NCBI RefSeq assembly: GCF_902652985.1
Contig: NC_047028.1
Span: 10,168,001-10,232,000 of the forward strand
Reading direction: 5' to 3'
Origin: Pecten maximus
Taxonomy: Eukaryota
Length of the DNA stretch: 64,000 nucleotides
The stretch's first letter is position 1; every line of letters begins with the position of its first letter. Under the pieces are notes generated by a model, which was not told the origin of the DNA, searched no databases, and saw nothing but the letters and a program-made list of their open reading frames with translations. Of this stretch, positions 1 through 38,150 are shown one piece after another. Position numbers and translations under genes: made by a program.

Positions 1-2625
1 CAAGGAGAGTAAGATCAGGTGGTCAATGAAAATAGGATCAGGTGGTCCAGGAGAGTAAGATCGGGTGGTCAAGGAGTTTAATATAAGGTGGTTGAGGAGA
101 TTAAGATCAGGTGGTCTAGGAAATTAAGATCACGGGTCCAGGAGAGTAAGATCGGGTAGTCAATGAGAGTAAGATCAGGTGGTCAAGGAGAGTAAGATCG
201 GGTGGTCAATGAGAGCAAGATCAGGTGGTTAAGGAGAGTAAAATCAGGTGGTCAAGGAGAGTAAGATCGGGTGGTCAAGGGGAGTAAGATCAGGTGGTCA
301 AGGAGAGTAAGATCAGGTGGTCCAGGAGAGTAAGCTCAGGTGGTCCAGGAGATTAAGATCAGGTGGTCAATGAAAATAGGATCAGGTGGTCCAGGAGAGT
401 AAGATAAGATGGTCAAGGAGAGTAAGATCAGGTGGTCAATGAAAATAGGATCAGGTGGTCCAGGAGAGTAAGATCGGGTGGTCAAGGAGTTTAATATAAG
501 GTGGTTGAGGAGATTAAGATCAGGTGGTCTAGGAAATTAAGATCACGGGTCCAGGAGAGTAAGATCGGGTAGTCAATGAGAGTAAGATCAGGTGGTCAAG
601 GAGAATAAAAGCAGGTGGTCAAGGAGAGTAAGATCGGGTGGTCAAGGAGAGTAAGATCAGGTGGTCAAGGAGAGTAAGATCGGGTGGTCAATGAGAGCAA
701 GATCAGGTGGTTAAGGAGAGTAAAATCAGGTGGTCAAGGAGAGTAAGATCGGGTGGTCAAGGAGAGTAAGATCAGGTGGTCCAGGAGAGTAAGATCAGGT
801 GGTCCAGGAGAGTAAGATAAGATGGTCAAGGAGAGTAAGATCAGGTGGTCAATGAAAATAGGATCAGGTGGTTCAGGAGAGTAAGATCGGGTGGTCAAGG
901 AGTTTAATATAAGGTGGTTGAGGAGATTAAGATCAGGTGGTCTAGGAAATTAAGATCACGGGTCCAGGAGAGTAAGATCGGGTAGTCTGTTTACGTATCG
1001 TTATATAGCACAAAAAGAACAAAGAATAACACAATAATCATAATTCAAACTCAAAATCGATTCAAACGATATCAAAAATCGATAAATAGATCTGTATGGA
1101 GACTGAAAATGCAGAAGGAGAGTAAGATCAGGTGGTCTAGGAGAGTAAGATCGGGTGGTCCAGGAGAGTAAGCTCAGGTGGTCAATGAAAATAGGATCAG
1201 GTGGTCAAGGAGAGTAAGATCAGGTGGTCCAGGAGAGTAAGCTCAGGTGGTCCAGGAGATTAAGATTAGGTGGTCAATGAAAATAGGATCAGGTGGTCCA
1301 GGAGAGTAAGATAAGATGGTCAAGGAGAGTAAGATCAGGTGGTCAATGAAAATAGGATCAGGTGGTCCAGGAGAGTAAGATCGGGTGGTCAAGGAGTTTA
1401 ATATAAGGTGGTTGAGGAGATTAAGATCAGGTGGTCTAGGAAATTAAGATCACGGGTCCAGGAGAGTAAGATCGGGTAGTCAATGAGAGTAAGATCAGGT
1501 GGTCAAGGAGAATAAAAGCAGGTGGTCAAGGAGAGTAAGATCGGGTGGTCAAGGAGAGTAAGATCAGGTGGTCAAGGAGAGTAAGATCGGTTGGTCAATG
1601 AGAGCAAGATCAGGTGGTTAAGGAGAGTAAAATCAGGTGGTCAAGGAGAGTAAGATCGGGTGGTCAAGGGGAGTAAGATCAGGTGGTCCAGGAGAGTAAG
1701 ATCAGGTGGTCCAGGAGAGTAAGATAAGATGGTCAAGGAGAGTAAGATCAGGTGGTCAATGAAAATAGGATCAGGTGGTTCAGGAGAGTAAGATCGGGTG
1801 GTCAAGGAGTTTAATATAAGGTGGTTGAGGAGATTAAGATCAGGTGGTCTAGGAAATTAAGATCACGGGTCCAGGAGAGTAAGATCGGGTAGTCAATGAG
1901 AGTAAGATCAGGTGGTCAAGGAGAATAAAAGCAGGTGGTCAAGGAGAGTAAGATCGGGTGGTCAAGGAGAGTAAGATCAGGTGGTCAAGGAGAGTAAGAT
2001 CGGGTGGTCAATGAGAGCAAGATCAGGTGGTTAAGGAGAGTAAAATCAGGTGGTCAAGGAGAGTAAGATCGGGTGGTCCAGGAGAGTAAGATCAGGTGGT
2101 CCAGGAAAGTAAGATCGGGTGGTCAAGGAGAGTAAGATCGGGTGGTCAAGGAAAGTAAGATCAGGTGGTCCAGGAGAGTAAGATCAGGTGGTCAGTGAGA
2201 GTAAGATCAGGTGGTCAAGGAGAGTAAGATCGGGTGGTCAAGGAGAGTAAGATCAGGTGGTCCTGGAGAGTAAGATCGGGTGGTCAATGAGAGTAAGATC
2301 AGGTGGTCAAGGAGAGTAAGATCGGGTGGTCAATGAGAGTAAGATCAGGTGGTCCAGGAGAGTAAGATCGGGTGGTCAATGAGAGTAAGATCAGGTGGTC
2401 CAGGAGAGTAAGATCGGGTGGTCAATGAGAGTAAGATCAGGTGGTCCAGGAGAGTAAGATCAGGTGGTCCAGGAGAGTAAGATCAGGTGGTCCTGGAGAG
2501 TAAGATCAGGTGGACCAGGAGAGTAAGATCGGGTGGTCAAGGAGAGTAAGATCAGGTGGTCAAGGAGATTAAGATCAGGTGGTCAAGGAGATTAAGATCA
2601 GGTGGTCCTGGAGAGTAAGATCAGG
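1..2625. repeat. 23-bp minisatellite (consensus CAAGGAGAGTAAGATCAGGTGGT) with higher-order blocks, runs off the window start
   Basis: Tandem unit visible directly. The variant series (…TTTAATATAAGGTGGTTGAGG…TCTAGGAAATTAAGATCACGGG…) recurs at ~75, ~490, ~900, ~1395 and ~1810. The array is interrupted by a non-repeat insert at ~987-1115. Confidence 0.97.
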
Positions 2626-4532: not shown

Positions 4533-5095
4533 CCTGTGTAGTAATCATACCACGATATTACCTGTGTAGTAATCATACCACGATATTACCTGTGTAGTAA
4601 TCATACCACGCTATTACCTGTGTAGTAATCATACCACGATATTACCTGTGTAGTAATCATACCACGCTATTACCTGTGTAGTAATCATACCACGATATTA
4701 CCTGTGTAGTAATCATACCACGATATTACCTGGGTAGTAATCATACCACGATATTACCTGTGTAGTAATCATACCACGATATTACCTGTGTAGCAATCAT
4801 ACCACGATATTACCTGTGTAGTAATCATACCACGCTATTACCTGTGTAGTAATCATACCACGCTATTACCTGTGTAGTAATCATACCACGTTATTACCTG
4901 TGTAGTAATCATACCACGATATTACCTGTGTAGTAATCATACCACGCTATTACCTGTGTAGTAATCATACCACGATATTACCTGTGTAGTAATCATACCA
5001 CGTTATTACCTGTGTAGTAATCATACCACGATATTACCTGTGTAGTAATCATACCACGATATTACCTGTGTAGTAATCATACCACGATATTACCT
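4533..5095. repeat. 28-bp minisatellite (CCTGTGTAGTAATCATACCACGATATTA), about 20 copies
   Basis: Near-perfect direct tandem copies with no spacers. Confidence 0.97.
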
Positions 5096-7416
5096 GAGAA
5101 GTTTCAGGTGAGAATGCGCTTGATCATGATGTCATTTTCTAAGAACTTCACTACAAATTCACGGATAATATCATCGTCTCCGTGATATAAAAGTTTACTG
5201 TTTACTGCTTTATTCGCGGTGTGATTATGAAGCATGTCTTAAACATTTGGGGAAATTACATCGACTAAGACAGTGATTTAATTATAATCTCAAACAGTCA
5301 CGATAACATCCGGATCTACATCTGTATATAACGTCAAAATCGGTATTAAATGAATAAAAATCCAAATTAAACTGAAATTTCACTGTATAACATCGTAATA
5401 AAATTAATATGACCTTGTTTGAACGTACGAATTCCAGTAGGGTGGAACAACAACAGACGTTTTACTTGAGCTATTTGAATGTTCTTATTTGCATTATCAA
5501 TATACTAATTGTAGGTAAAATATGATCATATCATGGTTGAATTTAAGAATATTTTACGGTCGGATTAAAGTTGTCCTAATAGGACTTACTGTTTGTTCAC
5601 AGGTAAAACGTAATGTTTATGTCGGCTTTAAACTATGAGTCATACTGGGTTACTATTAATACCAATTTGATATCTTATAACTACACGCGTACTCTTATAC
5701 CTATCGTATATGAATATGTCACCGTCGACACCATAACCAGACACAAAACACCGACAGAGTGTAAGGTCCATACAACCTCACACGGATGTTGTTTACATAC
5801 ATTCTATATCTTATACGTTATGGCACTGTGCTGTCTATATTAAATGTTCTGGGAGGTAAACATTAAGCGTGATTACCCCAGAGAGGTGATTAATTATTAT
5901 TGTTACGATTTTTGCTAGTTTAACTTTTTCAGCGAGGTAGTTGTTAAGCGTTGTTTTAGCTACTCATTCCTTAGATCCATAGTACCACTGGTAGAAACGA
6001 AATCGTAATTATAACTAAAGATCGGTAATACCGACATAATATCAAAACCCTTATTATTACTCAAAGTCAATAACATTAGAGCAGAAGACGAACAAACTAT
6101 TGATTTGAGTCGTGAGACTCGTTTCAACAACAGTGAAAATAATACCAGATGTCCCTAAAGAGTAAACGCCCCGATTCTTCCTCTGTGTTAAGTCATATCA
6201 ACCACTACTGTGAACATATCAACACACATCACATATGACATCAAATTTGTCAATGTCGATCAGGTATTGAAATACCTTACAATATCAGGCATTTTTCAAT
6301 GTTAACTCCAACATTCACGGATTTGTAGCGGCTACAGATATGTTATATATATATAGTTGCCTTTACCCATGAACCTTCATAAATGGTATGGGTACACAAT
6401 GAGATCTTATATTCACTCAATAGTAGATGTTTAGATTTATGAAGCAATACCTGAATATTCTTTGTAATCGTAATTAATAATATGTTTTACTCCATTATAT
6501 CTGCCATTGAGGAATACATTCTAATACTTTTCCTTACATAATAAGTAATAGTATGAAGTGTTTTGTTTTATCTTGGGTGTTCAACACTCGCAATAACCAG
6601 ACTTATATAAGGAGGCTAGTCAAGGGGACACCCACCGAGAAAAACAATGTCCAGAAGAACAGCTGGGAGGAAAATGTATAATGGGAGCAGAGGATCTATT
6701 TTGGTTTGTTCAATGTCCCCTAAAGAGCAACCACAAAGGAAATAATCAGAACACAAAGGAGAAACGATCCCTGAACCTGCATGGGCCCCTCGATTTGTCG
6801 CCTGTTACGCCATGCAGTTAGATATGGCAGGCGTTTAGTTATCGAAATTGAACTGGTATATTTGTACATTGATGTCAGTAACTGGATGAAAACATGTGAT
6901 ACTGTAATACACCGAGAGGTTCTTTGTATTGATATTTAATCTAACCTTTCACCCAACTCGAGTTATAAATACACTTACATGTATATTGTAAGTTCAGGTA
7001 CACAATGTATAGCATTTCCAAATAAGTAAACATCATTTGTATATATATTAACATAGTTTTATATGTTTCATATATGTTTAAATAACTTGATATGTTACTT
7101 TTCCAAACTGTTTGCGAAACAGTGGCAATAAACTAAAAATGACATGACTTTTTTTAGTGCTAGTCTGTAACTGGCTGAACGTGACTGTGTTATAAGTGGC
7201 GACCTTGAAGTAGACTGTAGTTTATATACTGTGTGTTATTTGTAGAGACGCGTGGCGATATCGAACTGGGTCACACGAGACCAGATGTAAACATTGAAAA
7301 CTAGACCATAACAATGTCATTTAACGTGATTTAAGAAGACTGGACATATTTGTGATTTCTGCTGATTTTAATTTGGAACAGCCATTTTCCAATCGTATCT
7401 AGATCTGTATTCATAG

Positions 7417-7678
7417 GGGGAAAACTGCAGGCAGGATTTCCAAGGATCTGTGACGTCAGTGTGTTGGCCAGGTTTGAGTACAGAAAAACACACACGGGGT
7501 ATCAACATAGCGTCAACCTGGTCCATATATTTGCTCGTGAGTATGGTTAAATGACTTCATTATATCAATATATATGTCTCTGAATTAATCCTTATCGAAA
7601 TATTATAGATCTTAAGTTTTCGAATATTTTGTAAGTTTTAGAAAAAAACAAATATGTTTAAATTGAGAAACCGAAAGT
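7417..7678 (+). promoter_or_regulatory. Putative immune-inducible promoter/enhancer of gene A: kB-like, CRE and ISRE-like motifs
   Basis: GGGGAAAACT at 7417, AGGATTTCC at 7433-7441, perfect CRE TGACGTCA at 7451-7458, and GAAACCGAAAGT (IRF-E/ISRE-like) at 7667-7678. The same kB+CRE pairing occurs upstream of paralog B. Confidence 0.5.
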
Positions 7679-8072
7679 AATACGAATGTTAACCTCTCTA
7701 TCTATAGTTGTCGACAAACTGTCATTTTACTACATGAATGCTTATGATTTGTTATCGTTTAGTCAACAAGAAAGAAAACGTGATATAACATACCTGTATA
7801 ATCTTTGTAAACCCAATAATCAATTTATATCCTAATTAATGTTTTTCGTATGTGAGGGTGTGTCTTTTTTTTTTTAATCTTTGTAAATCCAACAATCAAT
7901 TGATATCCTAATTAATGTTTTTCGTGTGTGAGGTTTTTTCTTCTTCTTAACAATTGGGACATTTTGATAAATTGTGCTATATATATGCATTTCGAACTTT
8001 TTAAACTTCCTGCTTATGAAATATCAATATTTATTTTTCAAGTTTGACCAAAACGATGCCGTGTACGTTCCG

Positions 8073-10015
8073 ATGATTACAACAATGGCACATCAACCAC
8101 GTAAATATGCTAATGTAGCACCCAAACTACCTGGAAGAGAGCGAAAACCTTCAGCTTGTGAATCTTGTAAATGTACTAACTGTAATGATTACGAATCCTG
8201 TAACAGTTGTTCTGTGGTAAACGATGGTTACCTTAGAACAGTCCACGACGAAAAACCACCAGTTCCATGTCGACAAAGGAGATTCACAGACGATTTTTCT
8301 CCAGAGGTATGTTTTAGGGAATCTATGATACAAGAGGATACACCAAAACACGACACTAAACGAATGAAGGAGCTTGATATTCAACTACCATTGCCAAATA
8401 TACCTATTGATTTTCAAAAGCCTGAGCCATTTCAGCATAAGGTCCGGAAACCTTCTGACACCCTTCCCATTCCTAATGCAACAGCAACACCCCAGCCCCC
8501 GCTACACACACAAAGGGCTGATGTGGAACCCGAACATGTCACAACGAACAAAGTGGAACAGGGTCGGCTGGCACAGGTGGATATAACATTACCTAGAAGA
8601 AAAAGTGAGTCTAGAAAAAGAAGAACACGCCAACCTAGGAAAGTACATGTATGGATGAAATTTGGGACCATCGTTTCTATAGTTTTACTTATCGGATTGT
8701 CATATATGATCTTTAAAAGTATTAGAGATATTTGCTTTGCACCGTATCACTATAAAAGCACTTCTTCTCGTCATAAATGGAATTATTCTGAACCAAACGA
8801 ATCTAGACTCGATACAACTATATGTTTTTCATGTGACATAATTGATAAATTTAAAGGAGAGCAGAGTAGATTCGATTTATATGGCTTCAAATCTACCGGT
8901 AACAGACGGCATTGCTGTTTGGACCAACTTGGACATATGAAATGGCTCGTTAGTATGGTAAGTTGGGATGTGACCTTATCTCTGTGTATGTAAACGCATG
9001 TGAATGGGAGGTAACTCTATGAAACAAACTTTTGAATGAATAGATACATCTGATAATTTAAAGGCATAGTATGCTACAGGGTAAAACGTTCATATACTAT
9101 AACAAATTATAATTAGTGAATTTCCCTTAGTATGATTTCATTAGGAATAATTCAATGATTTCATTAGGAATAATTCAATCCCTTAGTATAATTTCATTAG
9201 GAATAATTCAATCTTTGCATTTTTATTCATTTTTTCATGTCTACTTATATAGTGTATTGGATTCAAACTGTAAAACAAACTTTAAAGAAAAAAAATATTT
9301 ATTTGTTTCAGATGAAAACGAATGAAATTTTGCAAGATGAAGTGAGGGACAATTCTTCGACTACAGTATGCCCAGTGAAGGCTACACTTGTGCCAATCCA
9401 AAATGGAAGTAAGTCTCTTATAAACATTTACCCTCTTACTCCTTCAGAAAATAACAACGGTATAATATACAATATATATATACCCATATGTATTGCGTAT
9501 TTTATTAAGAAAATCAATTTAATAAGACAGATCGTTGAAAAAAATGGTAATGTATATTTATGTATGTGGCATGTATCTTAAATTAATTATTATAATATTG
9601 TATAATTTCAGACAAGACCGATTTAAAACTGAACAATACGGCTTTGCAAACACACTGTAGAGGAGCTTCGATAAATGTGACAAAGGACGCCCTAGTGACC
9701 AGAAAGGACGGATTGTATATTGTGTACATGACTATGTCAGTAAAACTAGCTTCAAGACAAACAGAAGGGAACGGACAACATGGAAACATTGCATTGAAAG
9801 CATATCTTTTTTGCAGTAAATCTAAAAGGGGAAAATGTATTGAAATGGAGACATTTAACAAAACCATAACGTATAGTGACCAAAATTTTCATGTGTTTAA
9901 TTTGTACACCGTGAAAAAATTTACAAATGGAGAACACTTTTACCCAGTGCTGTCCGAGCCGGGATATCTATACACAACGACAAAGGGTAACTTTATCGGT
10001 GTTGTGGAACTTTGA
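8073..10015 (+). CDS. Gene A: divergent TNF-superfamily ligand-like type II membrane protein with a long cytoplasmic tail, ~461 aa. Coding exons 8073-8957, 9312-9408, 9612-10015
   Basis: Acceptor at 8041-42 precedes ATG 8073. Donors ATG|GTAAGT (8958, phase 0) and GGAA|GTAAGT (9409, phase 1) and acceptors TTTCAG (9311, 9611) join in frame. TM FGTIVSIVLLIGLSYMIF follows a polybasic stretch, and the stalk has CFSC…HCCL. The last exon has the THD motifs LVTRKDGLYIVY and GNFIGVVEL*. Confidence 0.82.
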
Positions 10016-10020
10016 ATTTG

Positions 10021-10024
<4 letters not shown>

Positions 10025-10074
<50 letters not shown>
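10025..10074. repeat. (GA)n microsatellite immediately 3' of the gene A stop
   Basis: Seen directly. Confidence 0.97.
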
Positions 10075-10077
<3 letters not shown>

Positions 10078-13019
10078 GCGTCAGTTAAAAATAGGATGAG
10101 TGTAAAGAGGAGCCTATCTGTGTTCGAGAATTACACATACAAAAAATATATGTTAAAGCAATGTGATAGGAATAATTTGTGCCAATATTGACAGTAACTT
10201 CATAACCTTGACCATATGTACCTACTTGTGTAAAGGTTGCATTTCATATTAATTAAAAAATCATTACATTTGTCAATATTTCACCTGAACAGTAAAAATA
10301 ACCCTTAATTTAATATATCGTCGTGGCGTTCATCTGACGACGACATTATCAATTATACATAACAATTAATGAACGTATGCTATTATTTATTTAAACAATT
10401 ACGTTTACTTACACAATCTGCATTATCATTAAAGCGATCTTAAATCACTAGTCAGTACTAGCCATTTATTTTTTCCGAAATACTATTTTGAATGTCACAA
10501 CATACTTATACAAGTCCTGCGACTGATATCCAAGGGATGACTCGCTCTGCCTTGTTTATAAACAATGATCACGACAATTATACCGCTTTAGTGACTTATA
10601 AACAAATATTGTAAATAAAATAAAATGTATGTTTTAAATGCAAAATAAAATAATCTTTTTACAACTTTTGTTTGACTTTTTCTTTTCTTTTCCGTTTGAG
10701 TGTATACTGCTAATGCTACATAAATAGTAATATCATAAGTAAAACAAGAACTGTATAAGCCAGGTAAGATATAGATTGATGTTATTGATTTTACGTTGAG
10801 ACAAGACCACAAGACTAGATATTTCAAATGGTCAGCAAAAGCCAATCACGAATTAAGCTATTGTGTATTTTCAGTATTACTTAGGTTTGAAGTATGAAAA
10901 AGATACATTAATGCAAATAATGAATACAACCATTTATCTAAGAACGATAAATGTACAAATAATGAATAGGACAGTTTATTTAAAAAAAATCATCATATGA
11001 ACAATTAATACATGTACATGCTTTTATCTAACAAAGACACAGCAGAAAAATAATGAATACACACACTCATCTAACAAATATATATTTTACTAATAATGAA
11101 TACAATTATTTATATAATACGATACAATATACAAAAAATGAATACAGAAATTAATATAACAAAGATACACTATGCAAAATGAATACACAGATTCATCTGA
11201 AAAACATTTTTAAAAATACTTTAAAAATAATTAATACAATTATTCGTCTAAAAGGTGTCTCGTTCGTATAAAATACACCATTAATGTTTTAATATTTTGA
11301 TGTATAATGATGCAACGATTATTGAGATTTTTCAATTAAGATACACATTTTCTTTTGGAAAAAATACGTTAAGAATGGAGGACCTGCAAATGTTTATCCC
11401 GGGCTAATGTCCAAAATAGATATCTTGCCTGACTTGGGTAAACCCCCTTGCGGGGCCTCTACTTTATTGAATGTTTTTATCTTATTTCACACAGTTACAT
11501 ATGTAACAGTAATGTATATCCAGATACTCCTCGCAGCAGTCTGGTTGCACGTACATATACGTATGCGAGTTCTGCATTAACACTCGAACAAGCACTGGAT
11601 TTCCATAGGATTTACTGGACAAGTTCTAAATTAAATATAGCCTTAATCTAAATCAAACACTGTTTACTTCTCAAGTTGTAAATCTATAATGCATAATATC
11701 ACAACAGTGTGTCGGCTTAAAACGTCTGACAAAGTGAGATCAAACAAATATAATAGCTCTATTTTTGTCTGTGTGGTGAACGACATATAACAATACGAAC
11801 TTATTTTGTGTGCGCATTGCTTGACAACCATATGCAGTTCTTTAAGTAAGCAGAACACTTGAGATCAGTAGACTCGGCCAACATGACGTTTAGGCCGCGA
11901 TAATGAGTTCTGAGAAACTCCGATTATCACTTTCGTTTATGCAAGACCCCAATGTGAACTTAAATAGGCAAGCTACGTTATGTAGACTGTTTACTCTCAA
12001 CTATATAACAATGTTAGTTTTAATTTGCATAAATGTTGATATAATAGGTTTTGGTAGAATTAACTTGACAAAATTTTATGAAACTACAATACTCGTCAGT
12101 CTCTTTCTATCTTCCTATTTTAAAGAATACACACATTCAGGTTTTGAAGTAAAGGTGTGTTTTTTAATTGTTTTAGGTTAAGGAAAACAAACAGGATATT
12201 AGTATTCGGTAAAAGTTACTGGCTAATGATTCTGTAACAAGCACAAAAGTGAGTTACACATCGATATATGATTTTAACAGAATATTATAATATTTTAAAA
12301 GAATATATATAGAGGAAATTCAATGGTTTGCCGTTTAATATCAAATTATTTAAATCGTAAGGCAGATGTTTTTTCCCCTATTTTCACGCGTGCGTTGCAA
12401 GCTATTGGGAAATATGGACATCATTCAACAAATACGACCCGACCAGATTATCCTATGACTATCTTGTAATATAACCGGGAATAGTTAATACTTCTCCTCC
12501 AGACTACAAAAGACACAAACACGCACATTTCCAAACGAACTTGAGGGAGTGGGATAAAGTAGAGGAAACACGAGTTAAACTTCGTGGTACATCTTATTTT
12601 AGATTTATTTTTTATCTCTGATAGAAGACCTACTCTGTAAATCATCTGTTTCTTTGTGTTTTATCTAAGGTCAAACAGTATACTATCATTTTGTTTTATG
12701 GCGCGGTAAATAAAAAAATAAAGTGTATATCATATGAAGCGATACCTCGAAACGAACAAATTGACTTAACATCAATTTATTTATAGCTATGTTTCACTAT
12801 TTGTCAGATCCTCTGGTAAAGTAGCTATGTTTCACTGTTTGTCAGTTTCTCTGGTAAGGTAGCTATGTTTCACTGTGATATATAACACATACTAAATATG
12901 CCTTTCTGTAATGAATCGGCAATGATGAAAATTGTAAATGAAATATGATATACTTTATAACGAATACAATACAAATTATATCAATCACTTCCGCAGGCCT
13001 GTATGGAAACGTTTAAAAG

Positions 13020-14390: not shown

Positions 14391-15251
14391 ATGGCTGATC
14401 TGGTCGAACAATATTCAAGTCTGGAAACACTGTCAACTGACACGCTAAACATATGTAGATGTACTCACTGCTGTGAAAGTTACTCCAGTAACGATTCCTT
14501 TGGATACCTCGATGTTACCCCAGCTAAATTACCTATACCTTGTCCACAGAACCAACTCCCCGATTCCTTTTCTCCTGAGAAAAACTTTGTTGAAAGAACG
14601 AGAGTGAGTGAAGAACGCGAGTTAGATGGGAGACAAACAAACAAACGATGGCAAACTTCTTTTCCGTTTCAACAAGATGTCTTTCAGTTGGAGGGCAATT
14701 TGATTGAAAAATCAATTAGAAATGACAGCCAGGTGAAACAAAATGGTTCATGTCGACAAAATCAGTTACATGAAAAGTTTCAGACGGATATCAGTTGTGT
14801 GCCAACCACAAGTTGGGAAAATAATATAACAACGGCACGTGAGAGCCTTAGTCCAATGGCAAATGGTATTGAAATCCGAATGACTGTTGATGATCGGGTG
14901 ACTGGAAGGGGCAATCAACCATCAAATTTCACCTCTGCTCTCTTACCAGAACACGTCCGTCAACAACAGCATGCAGCGAGTTACAAATTTGTTCGATGTT
15001 ATCCTTTAGACGTATCTTCTCAGAATTCGCTTAAAGTACTTTCTTCTCGATGCTGGTATAGTCAACCATCATCTGGCGAATTACCTGATTCAAGTTCGGG
15101 GGGAATGATTCAGCCTCTGGTTTCTGGATGCAATATCAATCATAAACGAGGACAGAGCTGGATGCATGTGCAACGAAAAATCGGAATATTTTTCCCCGTC
15201 ATTATTTTCATTTGGTTAGTCTATATGCTCATTGAGAGTGTCTTTGAATAA
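14391..15251 (+). CDS. Gene B: paralog of gene A exon 1 (cytoplasmic tail + TM), 286 aa, ending just after the TM with no TNF domain. Either a truncated gene or a pseudogene
   Basis: Strong acceptor (T)nGCAG at 14359-60, ATG at 14391. CRCTHC…GYL…LPIPC…DSFSPE aligns with A's CKCTNC…GYL…PPVPC…DDFSPE. TM IGIFFPVIIFIWLVYMLIES aligns with A's FGTIVSIVLLIGLSYMIFKS. TAA at 15249. Confidence 0.65.
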   Translation: MADLVEQYSSLETLSTDTLNICRCTHCCESYSSNDSFGYLDVTPAKLPIPCPQNQLPDSFSPEKNFVERTRVSEERELDGRQTNKRWQTSFPFQQDVFQLEGNLIEKSIRNDSQVKQNGSCRQNQLHEKFQTDISCVPTTSWENNITTARESLSPMANGIEIRMTVDDRVTGRGNQPSNFTSALLPEHVRQQQHAASYKFVRCYPLDVSSQNSLKVLSSRCWYSQPSSGELPDSSSGGMIQPLVSGCNINHKRGQSWMHVQRKIGIFFPVIIFIWLVYMLIESVFE

Positions 15252-23339: not shown

Positions 23340-24930
23340 GAGGAGTTCATGACCAATCAGGCATTTATAAAGAAACTCTTTATCATTACATGATTACATA
23401 TAAGATCATACAAAACATCAGTCTGGCTTTACACCTGAAGATTCCACTGTAAATCAATTATTATCTATTTTCCATACCATTGTTAATTGCCTACATCAAA
23501 ATAAAGAAATCAGATTTATATTCTGTGACATAAGCAAGGCTTTTGATAGAGTTTGGCATAATGGACTGCTCTACAAGTTAGAATCATATGGTGTTAAAGG
23601 TAATCAACTAAAGTGGTTTCAAAACTTTTTATCAAATAGAAAACAGAGAGTTCTAACTGAAGGTCATGCTTCAGTATTTGACCACCCTGATCAGGCAGGG
23701 GTTCCAGAAGGCTCGGTCCTCTGCCCATTATTGTTTTTAATATATATCAATGATGTTGTTTACTGTGTCTCTAGTAAAAATAAATTATTTTCAGATGACA
23801 CTTCTCTTTATGGTACATGTAATGGTAATCCCATTAAATTGGCACAAACTCTTTCAGATGACTAATATTAAGCATTGGGCCACTAAATGGGACATCAAAT
23901 TAAATCCTTCCAAAACTGAATCTATTATCTTTTCAAGAAAAACTGACAAGAGTCACCCTATCATTACTTTTTATGGTGAACCTATTACACTTAGTGACGG
24001 TGCTAAATGGAACCAACACATATCTAGAATTTATGATAAAGCATTTAAAAGAATAAATATTCTAAGATTAATAAAAAAGAAAGTTGATAGAAAATCTCTG
24101 ACTATTATATATATACATCCTACATAAGACCAATTATTGAATACGCAGATGTTGTTTGGGACAACTGTACACTTAGCTCAAAAAATCTATTAGACACTAC
24201 ACAATTAGAAGCTGGGAGATTAATAACAGGTTTACGCAGAGGAACACTACATGATAAATTATACAAAGAATTAGTATGGGAATCTTTAAGTTGCAGAAGA
24301 AAGAATCATAAACTTATCATGCTGTATAGAATAATGAACAATGAAACTTCAGATTGTCTTCGAGATATTATTCAACCATATTTTCATGATGAAACTCTCG
24401 ACAGATATCACCTCCGAATAAATAGAATATTTGATCCCCCATTATATCGTACTGTAAGTTATTTTGAAAGTTTTTTCCATCCATGTTTAATGAAATTAAT
24501 AGACTTGATCCAGATTTTAGTAAAATGCAGTCTACGCCACAGCTTAAAAGGCTACTAAATAAAAGTCAATTTATAAGTCTGAATCAAATGATATTTTCAA
24601 ATTTTGTGGAAATCGAAATTTAAATATCATTCTATGCCAGTTAAGAAATAATACTAGTAATTTAAACTATGATCGTTACAAAGATCATTTAATTGAATGT
24701 GAATGCAATCAATCTTTTGAAACTGCATTACTTTATTTTTCAGAATGTAACAAATATGATAATATTCGTCAGATTCTCCAACAAAAAATTAAATCATTAC
24801 TCTCTTAATCATCGATGCATCAATGTCCTTTTACATGGTTGTAATAGTTGTAATAATACACAGAATAAAGATATATTATCACATATATCAAGCTATATAT
24901 CGCAATCAAATAGATTTCATAAATATTAAC
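23340..24930 (+). mobile_element. 5'-truncated, degenerate CR1/L2-type non-LTR retrotransposon (RT domain and 3' end of ORF2)
   Basis: Translation gives QSGF…STVNQL…FCDISKAFDRVWH…LSNRKQRV…GVPEGSVLCPLLFLIYIND…LFSDDT, then WDIKLNPSKT and IRPIIEYADVVW, with frameshifts. Confidence 0.92.
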
Positions 24931-27740: not shown

Positions 27741-30700
27741 ATGGGTAGGATATTATGTACCTCGAAACAACCAGGCTACCTTGAAAACCTGAGGCGGGCA
27801 TTTCATTTCAGTGTTGCAGTAAACGTTGTATTGGTCACAATATTAGTGATTCTATTTGTTGTTCGTCAGACGCTTCGTAACAAAGACATTCCAGCTACTG
27901 CTACCCCGACAACAGAGCCCTTTCACAGATGATACAGCCGGACAGATATGTCTGCCTTGTGACTTCCAAGGACAGGAAACGGTCGATACTCTGTATGCGT
28001 TCATGCTGAAGACTGACAACAACAACACCCTTTGTTGTCTTAAGCATGATGATGATCTACAGAGCCTGGTTCTTGCGGTGAGCAGATTTACCGAATCAAC
28101 ATAAGATGTTTTAAACAATTGTTACATTGTTTTTTTTTTATTTATTTCTATTAGTTATTTTATTTTGTATTTCAGCTAGAAGAGGAAAACCGGAATAACA
28201 GACACTCCAGGCAGGGGACAGGTTTGTAGTATCAGTGTACTGCTTTTACTGTTTTCTACGAAAAGCACACATTATAATTTGTCTCTGGCAGGCCATGCTA
28301 CATTTAACGGAGGTATCGGGTGTCATCATGGTGTTGTGTCCCTTCAGTTAGTAGCTTGGAATTGGTGACTTCGCAGTAGTTAATTTCGGTTTGCCTTTTC
28401 AAAGCCAAAAATAGGAACTTATCATATATTTTCAAATGAATTAGCCCACTTCTCACATTGGATTGCCTTCTAGGCAGGCAAAGTTGAAAATATTTTTGAA
28501 ATTGACTTATTCACCTGATTTTTTGTTAAAGGACTTAGGCTCGGAAATCGTGAAAACATTATTTATATCAAATCCCTAACTCTCGTCGCCAAACAAATAC
28601 AACGTGTAAAATATAAGTAACCACAGACTGGTTAGAATATTAAGGGCTTGAATATATCGCAGCCCATTATTTCAAATGGTAAGGAAATATTGAAGTCTTT
28701 CAATAAAACTTCAGGGGATTTCGAGTAAAATTGCACTTTTATTTTACAAGATAAATTGCGATGGTGGACGGAGAGAAATCACGCCGCACACCTATACGCA
28801 AGTGACCATTCCGCTGGTTCAGGTGAGTAAACAATTTGACCAAAAAAGCAGTCCATATTTTACTGTTAAAACTGAAAAATAGCGTCGATTCATCAAGGGT
28901 TTGTACTGGATGGACTCCCGTCAATGTGTCATTGCAAAAACAAAAAAAAAAAAAAAAGGATTTCTAACCTTGTTACGAATTCCGGTTAACGTTGTAGTTA
29001 GATTTCCCTCACGAATAATAATAAAAAGGGGGGAAAAAAATCTGTGTTTAATCTTGTAACCAGGAAGTTATGTTTGAAGTATCTGCTGACCCATACTTGG
29101 TCAGAAAATTCACCTATATAAACGAAGCGTGTTGCATATCTATCATCATTCTCTAACGAAGGTCTATTATTCTAAACGTACTAGTAAATATAATACAGTG
29201 TATTAATATATACATTTTAAGCAACCTGGAAATGTAACCTTTATTTTTATTATTACCTTGATTACCTGCTTTACTGGCCCGTTGTGCTCAAAGACTCCTT
29301 ATATATACATGAAATAAATTTCATGTTTCAATTCAACTAGATATGTCCCTTAATCAGCTATATATTCATATATAATTAAAAGTAGATAATGTCCTTGTGA
29401 TGGATATACATTGTAATAATAATAATAAAAAAAACACAAACCAGATAATCACAAGCGCTTTCACAGGCTTTGAATGACAATGACCAAAAGTATACAAAAA
29501 TATAAAATTGATGACGTCAAAATAAAAATATATACAATTGAAAATTATATAAAGGAAAACAACTGTTTTTACAGTAATATTGATTTGGAACTAAGCAGAA
29601 CTACATGAATCAAGACTTGGTTTAAATAGATTAATAAACATATTTTCTTTTGATTCCCTTTCTATAGCATCTGAGCTAGACATTTGGTATATAGAACATC
29701 GGTACATATGTTTACTAACTGTTAAAAATCTTAGATGGTCTGTTCCTATTTGCTGTTAATGTACTGTCATACGTTTTATAATTTCGTTGTCAGTCTGGCC
29801 AATGTAAAATTCTGAACAATTTTTGCAAATCATAGCATAGATAACAATTTTAAATATACAATTCATATTTGCTTTGATTTGAAATTTAGATCCGTTTTTG
29901 AACGTATAACTGGAACATTCTATAATACTTTTAAATGTACCACATCTAGGCCTACCACATTTAGATATACATGGAATTTGCTGTTCAGAATCAGATTTTG
30001 AACGGCATAATAAACGTTTCAAATTTCTTGGTTGTCGCTTACAATTTGTGATTTTATTTCTGTCTAATACCTTTTTCATCTTGTCACTATTCTTAAGAAA
30101 ATCTTCACAACTTCTAATGATTGGAAAGATATTAAAATCTAAATAATTGTGTGAATCTGTTGGTTTACAATATAGATCAGTAGTAATAATGTTGTCTTTC
30201 AATTCTACTAAATCATCAAGAAATGGTGAATGTATAAAAAAAAAAAAATAACGAAAAAACAAGACTTTGCCGCGCTGGCCTTTCAGCCCTCTCAGGCTTC
30301 TGCAGGCGGACTGAACATATAGGAGTAACGATTAAAGTACTTGTCTTATTTTGAAATAATGTGTTGTCTTCATTGTCTATACAAATGTAATTTATTCTGC
30401 TATGTTATAAAAGGTTTATCCTGGAACCATCGTGAAAGCAGGACGTCACTTTTACGGAATTTGACGTTAAGTGATGACGGGAGACAGCTGGCTGTTCACA
30501 CGATGCGAGGAGCAGGAAGTTACTTCGTCTATGCCTTATATACGTTTGACTTCAGCAACGCAACGTGGGACAGAAAATCACCAATAGGCGTCCACAACAT
30601 CTACAGACACCGCCCGACTATCATCAACGCCGAAAAACAAAGACTGTGGACGGCGAAGTTTCGTGGCGAAAAAAACGACGAAAAGACAGACGAGTTTCCT

Positions 30701-30848
30701 TTGTGGAATCGTTAACATGAACATTCATGACACTTTAGAATCCGAGGCCATTTCGTATGTAGCAGGAGAGGAGTGCACGTCCAAATGCATTGACGGATCG
30801 CCATATTCCAACTTTTTTGGCATGTTCAAACTTATCGAGTTTACCTGA
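27741..30848 (+). pseudogene. Gene D: closest paralog of gene C, with two +1 frameshifts (pseudogene or assembly indel errors). Exons 27741-28077, 28176-28221, 28751-28822, 30414-30848
   Basis: Same exon phases and motifs as C (CLPC…LCCL, RWWTERNHAAHLY, GAGSYFVY, TSFLCG, NFFGMFKL). There is an extra T in TTT at 27921-23 and an extra A in A7 at 30669-75. Splice sites are intact and I saw no other stops. Confidence 0.85.
29620..30235 (-). mobile_element. Penelope-like retroelement fragment (RT C-terminus + GIY-YIG endonuclease) in gene D intron 3
   Basis: ORF 29756..30262 contains TDLYCKPTDSHNYLDF, RQPRNLKRLL, CGRPRCGT and NC…VIYAMICKNCSEFYIGQT. Confidence 0.85.
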
Positions 30849-31599
30849 CTAAACTTCTGATGCAACAAAGTTATTGTTCTGGTATTATTGCTCAGTAAAA
30901 AAGATCAAATAAAACAAGGAACTGTTTTCTGTTCTGCAAATGATTTTCCTTCAATGACACCAATAAACAATAGACTCGTACGACAATAATTTATGTCTAG
31001 ATAAAGTATCACCATTTAAGATGGTTTTATCCGATCATCAAATATTGAAAATATAAAAAGTGCAATATATATATGAATATGCTATGGATAAAACACGCGT
31101 GAAACGGGAACATATATTAAGAAGCGAAATTTTCTAGTAAGAGACTGGGCAGCCCGATATCCTGACATGATCATAGCAAAACAGCGTCTATAAGATTATA
31201 TGAATACCTGGATGGCAAGGTGATATGCATGCACCAGTGAGAATTGTACACAAATAACATATATTTCAAATCCTTAATTTCAACAGAACAGAGTGAATAT
31301 GATATATTGTGTAAATGATTAGATATACAACGTAGTAAAACAAATGAGGAAGGAAGATGAATGTTTGATTCCTACCCAGACCAGGCCTGGTATACGTAAA
31401 TATCTACACTTAATATGAAATACAAATGTAGAAACATTAACAGCATAATTTACTTGTAAACAATGCATACACTAGGAAACACACAAGTACATGACCGGAC
31501 AACAGAAAGAAAGCCAATATATAGGACTTGATAAATCCACAACAAATGTGTATGTAAAATTAGCCATCTAAGAAGGAGTGAACTTGTTACATAGTTGAA

Positions 31600-34500
31600 C
31601 GGTAGAGAATTGAAAAGATGGTACAAACATAGAACAGTAGAATATTGACAAAGTTGGTACAAACATAGAACAGTAGAGTATTGATAAAGTTGGTACAAAC
31701 ATGGACAGTAGAGTATTGACAAAGTTGATACAAACATAGAACAGTAGAGTATTGACAAAGTTGATACAAACATAGAACAGTAGAGTATTGACAAAGTTGA
31801 TACAAACATAGAACAGTAGAGAATTGACAAAGTTTGTACAAACATAGAACAGTAGAATATTGACAAAGTTGGTACAAACATAGAACAGTTAAGTATTGAC
31901 AAAGTTGGTACAAACATAGAACAGTAGAGTATTGACACAGTTGGTACAAACATGGACAGTAGAATATTGACACAGTTGGTACAAACATGGACAGTAGAAT
32001 ATTGACAAAGTTGGTACAGACATAGAACAGTAGAGAATTGACAAAGTTGGTACAAACATGGACAGTAGAGTATTGATAAAGTTGGTACAAACATGGACAG
32101 TAAAGTATTGACAAAGTTGGAACAAACATGGACAGTAGATTATTGACAAAGTTGGTACAAAAATAGAACAGTAGAGTATTGACAAAGTTGGTACAAACAT
32201 GGACAGTAGATTATTGACAAAGTTGGTAAAAAACATAAAACAGTAGAATATTGACAAAGTTGGTACAAACATGGACAGTAGAGAATTGACAAAGTTGGTA
32301 CAAACATGGACAGTAGAGTATTGACAAAATTGGTACAAACATGGACAGTAGATTATTGATAAAGTTGGTACAAACATGGACAGTAGATTATTGATAAAGT
32401 TGGTACAAACATGGACAGTAGAGAATTGACAAAGTTGGTACAAACATACAACAGTAGAGAATTGACAAAGTAGTACAAACATAGAACAGTAGAGTATTGA
32501 CAAAGTTGATACAAACATAGAACAGTAGAGTATTGACAAAGTTGGTACAAACATGGACAGTAGAGTATTGATAAAGTTGGTACAAACATGGACAGTAAAG
32601 TATTGACAAAGTTGGAACAAACATGGACAGTAGATTATTGACAAAGTTGGTACAAAAATAGAACAGTAGAGTATTGACAAAGTTGGTACAAACATGGACA
32701 GTAGATTATTGACAAAGTTGGTAAAAAACATAAAACAGTAGAATATTGACAAAGTTGGTACAAACATGGACAGTAGAGAATTGACAAAGTTGGTACAAAC
32801 ATGGACAGTAGAGTATTGACAAAATTGGTACAAACATGGACAGTAGATTATTGATAAAGTTGGTACAAACATGGACAGTAGATTATTGATAAAGTTGGTA
32901 CAAACATGGACAGTAGAGAATTGACAAAGTTGGTACAAACATACAACAGTAGAGAATTGACAAAGTAGTACAAACATAGAACAGTAGAGTATTGACAAAG
33001 TTGATACAAACATAGAACAGTAGAGTATTGACAAAGTTGGTACAAACATGGACAGTAGAGTATTGACAAAGTTGGTACAAACATAGAACAGTAGAGAATT
33101 GACAAAGTTGGTACAAACATGGACAGTAGAGTATTGACAAAGTTGGTGCAAACATAGAACAGTAGAGTATTGTCAAAGTTGGTACAAACATAGAACAGTA
33201 GAGTATTGACAAAGTTGATACAAACATAGAACAGTAGAGAATTGACAAAGTTGGTACAAACATAGAACAGTAGAGAATTGACAAAGTTTGTACAAACATA
33301 AAACAGTAGAATATTGACAACGCTGGTACAAACATAGAACAGTTAAGTATTGACAAAGTTGGTACAAACATAGAACAGTAGAGTATTGACAAAGTTGGTA
33401 CAAACATGGACAGTAGAATATTGACAAAGTTGGTACAGACATAGAACAGTAGAGAATTGACAAAGTTGGTACAAACATGGACAGTAGAGTATTGATAAAG
33501 TTGGTACAAACATGGACAGTAAAGTATTGACAAAGTTGGAACAAACATGGACAGTAGATTATTGACAAAGTTGGTACAAACATAGAACAGTAGAGTATTG
33601 ACAAAGTTGGTACAAACATGGAACTGTAGATTATTGACAAAGTTGGTAAAAAACATAAAACAGTAGAGTATTTAAAGTTGGTACAAACATGGACAGTAGA
33701 GTATTGACAAAGTTGGTACAAACATAGAACAGTAGAGAATTGACAAAGTTGGTACAAACCTGGACAGTAGAGTATTGACAAAGTTGGTACAAACATAGAA
33801 CAGTAAAGTATTGACAAAGTTGGTACAAACATGGACAGTAGAGAATTGACAAAGTTGGTACAACCATGGACAGTAGAGTATTTTTAAAGTTGGTACAAAC
33901 ATGGACAGTAGAGTATTGACAAGTTGGTACAAACATTGAACAGTAAAGTATTGACAAAGTTGGTACAAACATCGACAGTAGAGTATTGACAAAGATGGTA
34001 CAAACATAGAACAGTAGCGAATTGACAAAGTTGGTACAAACATGGACAGTAGAGTATTTATCAAGTTGGTACAAACATGGACAGTAGATTATTGACAAAA
34101 TTGGTACAAACACGGACGGTAGAGTATTTTTAAAGTTGGTACAAACATGGACAGTAGAGTATTGACAAAGTTGGTACAAACATAGAACGGTAGAGAATTG
34201 ACAAAGTTGGTACAAACATGGACAGTAGATTATTGATAAAGTTGGTACAAACATGGACAGTAGAGAATTGACAAAGTTGGTACAAACATAGAACAGTAAA
34301 GTATTGACAAAGTTGGTACAAGCATGGACAGTAGATTATTGATAAAGTTGGTACACATATAGAACCGTAAAGTAATGACAAAATTGGTACAAACATGGAC
34401 AGTAGATTATTGATAAAGTTGGTACAAACATGGACAGTAGAGAATTGACAAAGTTGGTACAAACATAGAACAGTAGAGTATTTTTAAAGTTGGTACAAAC

Positions 34501-37500
34501 ATGGACAGTAGAGTATTGACAAAGTTGGTACAAACATAGAACAGTAGAGAATTGACAAAGTTGGTACAAACATGGACAGTAGATTATTGATAAAGTTGGT
34601 ACAAACATGGAGAGTAGAGAATTGACAAAGTTGGTACAAACATAGAACAGTAAAGTATTGACAAAGTTGGTACAAGCATTGACAGTAGATTATTGATAAA
34701 GTTGGTACAAACATGGACAGTAGAGTATTGACAACGTTGGTACAAACATGGACAGTAGAGTATTTTTAAAGTTGGTACAAACATGGACAGTAGAGAATTG
34801 ACAAAGTTGGTACAAACATGGACAGTAAAGTATTGACAAAGTTGGTACAAACATAGAACAGTATAGTATTGACAACGTTGGTACAAACATGGACAGTAGA
34901 TTATTGATAAAGTTGGTACAAACATAGAACAGTATAGTATTGACAACGTTGGTACAAACATAGAACAGTAAAGTATTGACAAAGTTGGTACAAACATGGA
35001 CAGTAGAGTATTTTTAAAGTTGGTACAAACATGGACAGTAGAGTATTGATAAAGTTGATACAAACATAGAACAGTAGAGAATTGACAAAGTTTGTACAAA
35101 CATAGAACAGTAGAATATTGACAAAGTTGGTACAAACATAGAACAGTAGAGAATTGACAAAGTTGGTACAAACATAGAACAGTAGAGTATTGACAAAGTT
35201 TGTACAAACATGGACAGTAGAGTATTGACAAAGTTGGTACAAACATGGACAGTAGAGTATCGACAAAGTTGGTACAAACATAGAACAGTAGAGTATTGAC
35301 AAAGTTGGTACAAACATAGAACAGTAAAGTATTGACAAAGTTGGTACAACTATGGACAGTAGAGTATTGACAAAGTTGGTACAAACATGGACAGTAGATT
35401 ATTGACAAAGTTGGTACAAACATGGACAGTAGAGTATTGACAAAGTTGGTACAAACATGGACAGTAGAGAATTGACAAAGTTGGTACAAACATGGACAGT
35501 AGAGTATTGACAAAGTTGGTACAAACATAGAACAGTAAAGTATTGACAAAGTTGGTACAAACATGGACAGTAGATAATTGACAAAGTTGGTACAAACATG
35601 GACAGTAGAGTATTGACAAGTTGGTACAAACATTGAACAGTAGCGAATTGACAAAGTTGGTACAAACATGGACAGTAGAGAATTGACAAAGTTGGTACAA
35701 ACATAGAACAGTAAAGTATTGACAAAGTTGGTACAAGCATTGACAGTAGATTATTGATAAAGTTGGTACAAACATGGACAGTAGAGTATTGACAACGTTG
35801 GTACAAACATGGACAGTGGAGTATTTTTAAAGTTGGTACAAACATGGACAGTAGAGTATTGACAAAGTTGGTACAAACATAGACAGTTGATTATTGATAA
35901 AGTTGGTACCAACATAGAACAGTAGAGTATTGACAAAGTTGGTACAAACGTGGACAGTAGATTATTGATAAAGTTGGTTCAAACATGGACAGTAGAGAAT
36001 TGACAAAGTTGGTACAAACATAGAACAGTAGATTATTGACAAAGTTGGTACAAACATGGACAGTAGATTATTGATAAAGTTGGTACAAACATAGAACAGT
36101 AGATTATTGACAAAGTTGGTACAAACATAGAACAGTTAAGTATTGACAAAATTGGTACAAACATGGAAAGTCGATTATTGATAAAGTTGGTACAAACATA
36201 GAACAGTAAAGTATTGACAAAGTTGGTACCAACATAGAACTGTAGATTATTGACAAAGTTGGTACAAACATGGACAGTTGAGAATTGACAAAGTTGGTAC
36301 AAACATAGAACTGTAGAGTATTTTTAAAGTTGGTACAAACATGGACAGTAGAGTATTGACAAAGTTGGTACAAACATAGACAGTTGATTATTGACAAAGT
36401 TGGTACAAACATGGACAGTTGATTATTGACAAAGTTGGTACAAACATAGAACAGTTAAGTATTGACAAAGTTGGTACAAACATAGAACTGTAGATTATTG
36501 ACAAAGTTGGTACAATCATGGACAGTAGAGAATTGAGAAAGTTGGTACCAACATAGAACTGTAGATTATTGATACAGTTGGTACAAACATGGACAGTAGA
36601 GTATTGACAACGTTGGTACAAACATGGACAGTAGAGAATTGACAAAGTTGGTACAAACATAGAACTGTAGAGTATTTTTAAAGTTGGTACAAACATGGAC
36701 AGTAGAGTATTGACAAAGTTGGTACAAACATAGAACTGTAGAGTATTGACAAAGTTGGTACAAACATCGACTGTAGAGTATTGACAAAGATGGTACAAAC
36801 ATAGAACAGTAGATAATTGACAAAGTTGGTACAAACATAGAACAGTTAAGTATTGACAAAGTTGGTACCAACATAGAACTGTAGATTATTGACAACGTTG
36901 GTACAAACATGGACAGTAGAGAATTGACAAAGTTGGTACAAACATAGAACTGTAGAGTATTTTTAAAGTTGGTACAAACATGGACAGTAGAGTATTGACA
37001 AAGTTGGTACAAACATAGAACTGTAGAGTATTGACAAAGTTGGTACAAACATCGACTGTAGAGTATTGACAAAGATGGTACAAACATAGAACAGTAGATA
37101 ATTGACAAAGTTGGTACAAACATAGAACAGTTAAGTATTGACAAAGTTGGTACCAACATAGAACTGTAGATTATTGACAACGTTGGTACAAACATGGACA
37201 GTAGAGACTTGACAAAGTTGGTACAAACATAGAACTGTAGAGTATTTTTAAAGTTGGTACAAACATGGACAGTAGAGTATTGACAAAGTTGGTACAAACA
37301 TAGACAGTTGATTATTGATAAAGTTGGTACCAACATAGAACAGTAGAGTATTGACAAAGTTGGTACAAACGTGGACAGTAGATTATTGATAAAGTTGGTT
37401 CAAACATGGACAGTAGAGAATTGACAAAGTTGGTACAATCATAGAACAGTTGAATATTGACAACGTTGGTACAAACATAGAACAATAGAGTTTTGATAAA

Positions 37501-38150
37501 ATCGGTACAAATATAGAAAAGTAAAGTATTTACAAAGTTGGTACAAACATAAAACAGTAGAGAATTGACAAAGTGGTACAAACATGGACAGTAAGAGTAT
37601 TGACAAAGTTAGTACAAACATAGAACAGTAGAGTATTTTTAAAGTTGGTACAAACATAGAACAGTAGAGAATTGACAAAGTTGATACAAACATAGAACAG
37701 TAGAATATTGACAAAGTTGGTACAAACATAGAACTGTAGAGAATTGACAAAGTTGGTACAAACATGGACAGTAGAGTATTGATAAAGTTGGTACAAACAT
37801 AGAACAATAGATTATTGACAAAGTTGGTACAAACATGGACAGTAGATTATTGACAAAGTACGTACAATCATGGACAGTAGAGTATTGACAAATTTGGTAC
37901 AAACATAGAACAGTAGAGAATTGACAAAGTTGGAACAAACATAGAACAGTAGAGTATTTTTAAAGTTGGTACAAACATGGACAGTAGATTATTGACAAAG
38001 TTGGTACAAACATAGAACAGTAGAGAATTGACAAAGTTGATACAAACATAGAACAGTAGAGTATTGACAAAGTTGGTACAATTATAGAACAGTAGAGAAT
38101 TGACAAAATTGGTACAAATATAGAACAGTAGAAAGGAAGTTGGTACAAAA
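31600..38150. repeat. ~6.5-kb minisatellite of mixed 35/36-bp units (GTACAAACAT[AGA/GG]ACAGTAGAGTATTGACAAAGTTG), roughly 185 copies
   Basis: Direct tandem array. All minus-strand ORFs here are translations of the repeat. Higher-order periods of ~495 bp (32060-33050) and ~285 bp (36630-37250). Confidence 0.98.

Follow-up and report, generated by a model that had tools for sequence, protein, structure and literature searches.

Reverse signaling through vertebrate ligands of the TNF family is established and rests on cytoplasmic tails of 22 to 80 residues. The tail of TNF contains a casein kinase site, and cleavage of the protein by signal-peptide-peptidase-like proteases releases an intracellular domain that signals in the nucleus. 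Short cytoplasmic cysteine motifs are known from the zinc clasp, in which the CxC of CD4 or CD8 pairs with the CxxC of Lck, and from palmitoylated cysteine clusters, such as that of SNAP-25. Among vertebrate members of the TNF superfamily (TNFSF), it is FasL that has the long tail, whose approximately 80 amino acids bind SH3 adaptors (Grb2, Fyn, and PI3K) and function in sorting and in reverse signaling (PMC6389649). A preprint that does not discuss cytoplasmic tails documents that TNF ligands have expanded in molluscs (bioRxiv 10.1101/2024.07.27.603686), and our search of the literature returned no report of mollusc TNF ligands with long cytoplasmic tails. Here, we analyze gene A, a TNF-like gene of the scallop Pecten maximus that lies within a window of 64,000 nucleotides (contig NC_047028.1, positions 10,168,001 to 10,232,000, forward strand). 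A reading of this window from its letters alone (the sequence-only reading) had credited gene A with a cytoplasmic tail of about 190 amino acids, and the tail indeed measures 196 amino acids from the ATG at position 8073 and 192 from the ATG at position 8085.

Gene A resembles FasL, whose tail is the nearest analog, in specifying a type II, TNF-fold ligand with an unusually long, conserved, proline-containing tail bearing short candidate docking motifs. The two tails differ in length (approximately 80 amino acids in FasL versus approximately 190 in gene A and 155 to 300 in its relatives) and have no sequence homology, and we know of no counterpart in FasL to the CxCxxC...C set, the two invariant tyrosines, or the FSPExxF block of the scallop tail. 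A polyproline run comparable to that of FasL is present in the ortholog from Mizuhopecten alone. With membrane TNF-alpha, gene A shares its type II orientation, a basic juxtamembrane stretch (a potential nuclear localization signal [NLS] upon release), and serine sites in the tail, but the tail of TNF is only about 30 amino acids long. Similarly, the CD4/CD8-Lck clasp and SNAP-25 are like gene A in placing short CxC or CxxC motifs in an otherwise unstructured cytoplasmic segment, but they are not homologous to gene A, whose cluster is situated about 150 residues from the membrane.

Structure and expression of gene A

The tail of gene A is transcribed and in frame. Gene A corresponds to P. maximus LOC117342692 (P0001, 461 amino acids), which NCBI labels "uncharacterized protein," and positions 8073 to 8957 (885 nucleotides [nt]) match residues 1 to 295 of P0001 with 100% identity; residues are numbered throughout according to P0001, with M1 at position 8073. 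RNA contigs from four runs, representing four studies, were placed on positions 6000 to 10800 of the window. Three GT..AG joints (7536|8043, 8957|9312, and 9408|9612) are present in all four runs and divide the gene into four exons, three of them coding and preceded by a non-coding 5′ exon, with the tail in exon 2. In two of the studies, contigs of 1,728 and 1,778 nt, which start at positions 7260 and 7210, respectively, and reach the stop at 10015, join the leader exon, the tail, the transmembrane helix, the stalk, the TNF domain, and the stop in single spliced contigs; the other two studies provide overlapping contigs with the same three joints. No joint occurs within positions 8043 to 8956, where the contigs are unbroken, and none of the transcripts begins just before the transmembrane helix, the spliced contigs including the leader and the whole of the tail. 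The exons supported by the RNA are laid out exactly as in the NCBI model (295 + 32 + 1 + 133 = 461 amino acids), and the database protein P0001 was used for all full-length analyses. The features of the gene are as follows.

7210..7536, + strand: non-coding 5′ leader exon, spliced to 8043; at least this extent (contigs reach 7210 and 7260; 5′ end unmapped)
8043..8957, + strand: exon 2, with 30 nt of 5′ untranslated region (UTR), the tail, the transmembrane helix, and the extracellular Cys stalk (RNA joints)
8073..8660, + strand: cytoplasmic tail, 196 amino acids (sequence; AlphaFold2 predicted local distance difference test [pLDDT] of 24 to 34, no secondary structure)
8661..8714, + strand: single transmembrane helix, residues 197 to 214, a predicted type II signal anchor (sequence; AlphaFold2 helix at residues 194 to 221)
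8715..8957, + strand: extracellular stalk, CxxC...CC (C251, C254, C281, and C282 invariant)
9312..9408, + strand: exon 3, TNF-domain strand A with VKATL (joints in all four runs)
9612..10015, + strand: exon 4, remainder of the TNF homology domain and the stop codon (RNA contigs, Pfam TNF, and Foldseek)
10016..10590, + strand: 3′ UTR (contigs on 10083 to 10590)

A type II topology is predicted for the product of gene A, which has one hydrophobic segment (residues 197 to 214) preceded by 11 Lys and Arg residues and followed by KSIRD. When searched with the Pfam TNF model (PF00229; cutoff, 23 bits), P0001 scores 15.1 bits and its last-exon frame alone (positions 9644 to 10012) scores 18.9 bits; the Mizuhopecten ortholog (P0002) exceeds the cutoff, at 23.4 bits, and neighboring paralogs score 25.8 and 26.5 bits. 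In an AlphaFold2 model based on eight family members, residues 318 to 460 are all beta and form a jelly-roll, with block-mean pLDDT values of about 50 to 88. The top Foldseek matches to this model are TNF-alpha, FasL, RANKL, and LIGHT (E values of about 1e-8 to 1e-7), and target template modeling scores (TM-scores) range from 0.55 to 0.73, with values of about 0.7 for TNF-alpha, FasL, and RANKL. The replacement of AAHL by VKATL in the TNF domain, which the sequence-only reading had pointed out, is present in the sequence. As modeled, the product of gene A is a type II membrane protein whose ectodomain has the TNF fold.

The coding region does not extend into the leader exon, because the leader, when read in the coding frame, contains a stop (7411 to 7413) with no subsequent ATG, making the ATG at 8073 the first that is in frame. 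The ATG at 8085 has a better Kozak context than that at 8073 (A at position −3 and G at position +4) and lines up with the "MA" at which most relatives begin. Besides two upstream ATGs in the leader exon, at 7285 and 7314, gene A has the following short upstream open reading frame (ORF).

8056..8076, + strand: upstream ORF of six codons, ending in a TGA that shares bases with the first in-frame ATG (ATGA) (read from sequence)

The upstream ORF, the upstream ATGs, and the weak context of the ATG at 8073 suggest regulated or leaky initiation, perhaps favoring the ATG at 8085. The open frame of 196 codons is itself not accidental, because the chance of so many stop-free codons is about 5e-7 (at 35% G+C and a stop frequency of about 0.07 per codon).

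Several minor features of the transcripts were also recorded. A donor at 9459|9460, which is in the same phase as the used donor (9408|9409) and 51 nt past it, is unused in all four RNA runs. One low-depth contig (run X7) contains two substitutions, 8103 A>G and 8139 G>C, resulting in K11E and E23Q, both in the weakly conserved linker that connects YANV to the Cys cluster. A (GA)n microsatellite at approximately 10021 to 10076, within the 3′ UTR and starting fewer than 10 bases after the stop of gene A, is a site at which the RNA contigs break.

Motifs, conservation, and constraint of the tail

The motifs that the sequence-only reading had listed for gene A (YANV, the Cys cluster, GYL, the PxxP motifs, the polybasic stretch, and the transmembrane segment) were all found where it had placed them. 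Those of the tail, together with three further conserved blocks, are given below.

8106..8117, + strand: Y12-A-N-V, residues 12 to 15, a YxN site that six of the seven A-type proteins retain (YANV in four, YVNV, and YENT)
8157..8210, + strand: Cys cluster of six cysteines, C29 to C46, in which C32, C34, and C37 are invariant and CxCxxC is followed by H, N, or C and then by D or E (alignments A3, A4, and A5)
8226..8270, + strand: G-Y53-L, residues 52 to 54, then (K/R)(P/L)P-x-(P/Q)-C66 (alignments); Y53 is invariant in alignment A5
8289..8321, + strand: DDFSPEvcFrE block, residues 73 to 83 (F75, S76, P77, E78, and F81 invariant)
8373..8396, + strand: LDIQLPLP, residues 101 to 108 (conserved in A-type proteins, degenerate in B-type proteins)
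8445..8477, + strand: RKPSDtLPiPN, residues 125 to 135 (conserved in pectinid A orthologs)
8595..8642, + strand: polybasic juxtamembrane stretch with RRKS, residues 175 to 190 (11 Lys and Arg in the last 26 tail residues)

As raw counts, the motifs in this tail are not beyond what composition predicts, and their weight comes from conservation. PxxP motifs start at residues 17 (PKLP), 62 (PPVP), 106 (PLPNIP), and 140 (PQPP), which amounts to four against approximately 2.7 expected (23 prolines in 195 amino acids), and there is one YxN in the tail against approximately 0.12 expected. We take YxN with Val at +3 to match the preference of the Grb2 SH2 domain, and RKPSD matches an R-K-x-S site of the type used by basophilic kinases, for which RRKS is also a fit. 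The S-P within FSPE could be a proline-directed site, and the polybasic stretch may be only a positive-inside signal. Consensus motifs for TRAF2 and TRAF6 and the immunoreceptor tyrosine-based inhibitory and switch motifs (ITIM and ITSM) were judged by eye and fit none of the conserved positions.

Relatives of the tail are few. An initial search recovered the ortholog in Mizuhopecten yessoensis (P0002, 496 amino acids), and a profile was then built from three tails, those of gene A, the Mizuhopecten ortholog (locus L001), and a paralog, B, which lies downstream of gene A in the window. Among 1.84 billion representative proteins, this profile matched only six, P0001 to P0006, which include a protein of Ylistrum balloti (P0003), the product of a further, B-type gene of Mizuhopecten (P0005), and two proteins from transcriptome assemblies (P0004 and P0006). 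An alignment-based search added a protein from Argopecten irradians (P0011, 567 amino acids) and another protein that is close to it (P0012). A word-index search with residues 1 to 110 of P0001 returned nothing beyond the query; the relatives came from the profile and alignment searches. All tail relatives found are type II proteins with a common stalk and TNF domain, and A and B are the only P. maximus genes in which the tail module was found in the genome. As far as these searches show, members of the subfamily exist only in scallops and in two transcriptome assemblies.

Searches for known domains in the tail were negative. Pfam returned only DUF7358 (E = 0.15, spanning the transmembrane segment) for the tail, the N-block, and all family members; NCBIfam yielded no match to the tail; and the full-length and N-block profiles matched nothing in the PDB sequences but glypican-3 (E = 0.12). 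We regard both the DUF7358 and the glypican-3 matches as due to chance. In the ESM Atlas, there was no usable match by features, and structural neighbors had TM-scores of at most 0.31, which are meaningless for a disordered model.

Strict conservation occurs in islands along the tail. Ten residues are invariant in seven sequences of both A and B types: C32, C34, C37, P63, C66, F75, S76, P77, E78, and F81. A block reading CxCxxC...Y(L/I)...PxPC...FSPE, whose conservation in orthologs the sequence-only reading had proposed as a check on its motifs, is kept in every relative found, those from Mizuhopecten, Ylistrum, and Argopecten and three proteins known from transcriptomes. LPLP, RKPSD-LP-PN, and TLPR(R/K)KS are features of the A type; of the proline motifs, PPVP(C) and LPLP are conserved. 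Both P0005 and the aligned A-type proteins have a basic juxtamembrane stretch, and Pecten B has only four Lys and Arg residues there. Tail length ranges from about 155 amino acids in P0005 to about 300 in Argopecten. The tails of P0011 and P0012 contain, at approximately residues 25 to 95, a tandem repeat of about 20 residues (ERERKTSACEQK.. type) between YANV and the Cys cluster, which lengthens the tail to this extent and leaves the conserved blocks intact.

Nei-Gojobori counts from single-exon codon alignments of Pecten and Mizuhopecten, performed exon by exon, gave the following proportions of nonsynonymous (pN) and synonymous (pS) differences and amino acid identities.

Tail N-block, residues 5 to 110: pN 0.18, pS 0.70, identity 68%
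Juxtamembrane part: pN 0.20, pS 0.65, identity 65%
Tail middle, residues 111 to 170: pN 0.38, pS 0.75, identity 42%
Stalk: pN 0.25, pS 0.62, identity 56%
TNF-domain exon: pN 0.31, pS 0.61, identity 49%

The mean pairwise identity of the tail core (residues 29 to 83) is above that of the TNF domain in all three comparison sets (0.63 versus 0.51, 0.52 versus 0.46, and 0.38 versus 0.35). The tail core is therefore under no less constraint than the receptor-binding domain, and these estimates place the conserved motif block under purifying selection that is at least as strong as that on the TNF domain.

This constraint is not accompanied by a predicted fold. Residues 1 to 190 have no secondary structure in the AlphaFold2 model (pLDDT of 24 to 34), and the N-block modeled alone, from six sequences and free of metal, has no predicted fold (pLDDT of 55; predicted TM-score [pTM] of 0.14). 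The tail is predicted to be an intrinsically disordered region with short linear motifs, in which conserved islands are set in a variable, indel-rich background.

The sequence-only reading had viewed gene A as unique among its neighbors in possessing a long tail, which proved wrong, because paralog B shares it.

14391..15251, + strand: paralog B, with a homologous long tail and a transmembrane helix but no ectodomain

The tail of B is approximately 263 to 275 amino acids long and homologous to that of A, and its frame stops five codons after the transmembrane helix; no remnant of a stalk or TNF domain was found downstream. The B-type gene of Mizuhopecten (P0005, locus L007) is intact and has kept its ectodomain. 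The tail of B evolves faster than that of A (pN of 0.30 in the N-block, and pN of 0.48 versus pS of 0.66 in the rest), and an exact-product look-up in the protein collection found no record of its product. Paralog B may be decaying, or it may be a tail-only regulator.

Candidate functions of the tail

The elaborate cytoplasmic side of the TNF ligand in gene A and its relatives is genuine: as judged from RNA contigs and alignments, it is expressed, conserved, and restricted to one lineage, and the tail probably docks intracellular partners. The explanation that we rate as best, and as somewhat better than an even prospect, is that of a TNF-ligand subfamily whose cytoplasmic tail has grown to 155 to 300 residues and acts as a docking scaffold. 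The short linear motifs of this scaffold would couple the membrane ligand to cytoplasmic partners, such as SH2 or SH3 adaptors and kinases, and this coupling would permit outside-in ("reverse") signaling, regulated sorting to the cell surface, or both. Exactly four cysteines (C32, C34, C37, and C66) are invariant, which would suit a tetrahedral metal site or S-acylation; they might bind metal, perhaps between the chains of a trimer or together with a partner, or might be acylated such that the N-terminal block is pinned to the membrane. The sequence-only reading had gone further, viewing A as a possible bidirectional ligand or receptor. Its core, that this type II protein of the TNF fold has a cytoplasmic tail with a function, finds support in the RNA contigs, conservation, and purifying selection, making a function for the tail plausible; Grb2 or SH3 docking, acylation or zinc binding by the cysteines, an NLS with nuclear release, intramembrane proteolysis, and reverse signaling would be possible specifics of that function.

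Several points weigh against a docking scaffold. The proposed roles in binding, phosphorylation, acylation, and signaling are all drawn from the resemblance of motifs, and the tail profile detected no sequence homology to FasL or other known tails among the 1.84 billion representatives. YxN is lost in P0006 (YQVV) and absent from B-type proteins; among the four PxxP motifs, whose total is near chance, PKLP and PQPP lack conservation; and a polybasic juxtamembrane stretch is generic, as expected for any type II protein by the positive-inside rule. Synonymous sites are saturated in the comparison of Pecten with Mizuhopecten, such that dN/dS ratios are rough, although the ordering of the regions is nonetheless clear, and the alignments supplied to AlphaFold2 are shallow (six to eight sequences), such that the want of a fold is weak evidence.

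The same motifs might serve trafficking, endocytosis, or storage, for example by binding adaptors or SH3 proteins or by pinning the tail to the membrane through acylated cysteines, with no signal being sent upon engagement of the ectodomain. Pectinid A-type proteins with FTDDF read F-x-D-x-F before FSPE, which we take to be similar to ligands of the AP-2 appendage, and the proline-rich tail of FasL has a documented role in targeting to secretory lysosomes (PMC6389649). However, F-x-D-x-F is not conserved in all members, sorting alone does not explain the two invariant tyrosines and several basophilic serine sites, and trafficking signals are usually few and short compared to the approximately 80 constrained residues here. 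We consider a tail for sorting or retention only as unlikely. It is also conceivable that the protein serves mainly as a type II receptor or co-receptor, in which a divergent TNF domain senses and the tail is the sole output, with B as a regulator or decoy of its partners. A tail core no less conserved than the TNF domain, the divergence of the latter (15 bits versus the Pfam cutoff of 23, and VKATL for AAHL), and the retention by B of the tail block without an ectodomain would all accord with such a role; but the B protein is not on record and its expression is putative, the faster evolution of its tail is compatible with decay, and the Mizuhopecten B-type protein retains its ectodomain. We view a primary receptor function as rather improbable.

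A far less probable explanation, and one that the data largely refute, is that the long N-terminal region is an annotation artifact or neutral spacer, either an untranslated leader or a segment translated without function. Although the region matches no known domain, is predicted to be disordered, is poorly conserved and indel-rich at residues 111 to 170, and follows leader ORFs that could reduce translation from the first ATG, it is contained in spliced mRNAs, its frame is open in every relative despite large indels, its motifs are invariant in four scallop genera and both paralog types, and both its N-block and its juxtamembrane part have pN values much lower than pS.

The scallop tail is two to four times the length of that of FasL, and its core is no less constrained than the cytokine domain, which argues that selection can act mainly on the part of a TNF ligand that lies inside the cell. 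A bolder possibility, and a doubtful one, is that a scallop TNF ligand has turned into a two-way receptor, in which the Cys set and the two tyrosines would recruit a kinase or adaptor upon engagement and B would be a "headless" modulator; if true, this would constitute the most elaborate reverse-signaling apparatus known for any TNF-family ligand, and one independent of that of FasL. The system is tractable in that it offers discrete motifs and invariant residues, with a tail-only paralog in one species and the intact gene in another. TNF expansions in molluscs have usually been catalogued by ectodomain only, and the genes studied here carry no annotation beyond "uncharacterized."

Short-tailed paralogs and other features of the window

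Apart from B, the neighbors of gene A are short tailed. The sequence-only reading had assigned them tails of about 15 to 25 amino acids, which holds for the paralogs at 19916, 50396, 55738, and 58956 but not for B, with its tail of over 260. These paralogs are like gene A in their three-coding-exon layout, their CxxC...CC stalk, and their position on the same strand in the same tandem cluster; they are unlike it in that their tails, of 13 to 28 amino acids, are dissimilar to that of A and their TNF domains retain the AAHL and Trp motifs. The three coding exons of gene A, though correctly noted, had been considered atypical, which they are not: a small middle exon with a WW..ERN.AAHLY motif occurs in the short-tailed paralogs (at 21282, 28783, 51272, 56920, and 60163), indicating that this layout is common to the cluster.

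A truncated copy of the TNF domain, which stops prematurely, is located beside ORF fragments that resemble retroelements (reverse-transcriptase-like and GIY-YIG-like) in the region covering 30341 to 30715, 23750 to 24127, and 29756 to 30262 (− strand); this copy is probably a pseudogene disrupted by insertions. The window also contains large minisatellites. The largest is a minisatellite of 6.5 kb (31597 to 38132) with a 35/71-bp unit and strong GC skew, and another, of 2.6 kb with a 23-bp unit, occupies the start of the window (1 to 2625). Additional arrays have units of 28, 42, and 41 bp (4533 to 5096, 54247 to 54836, and 60285 to 61713).

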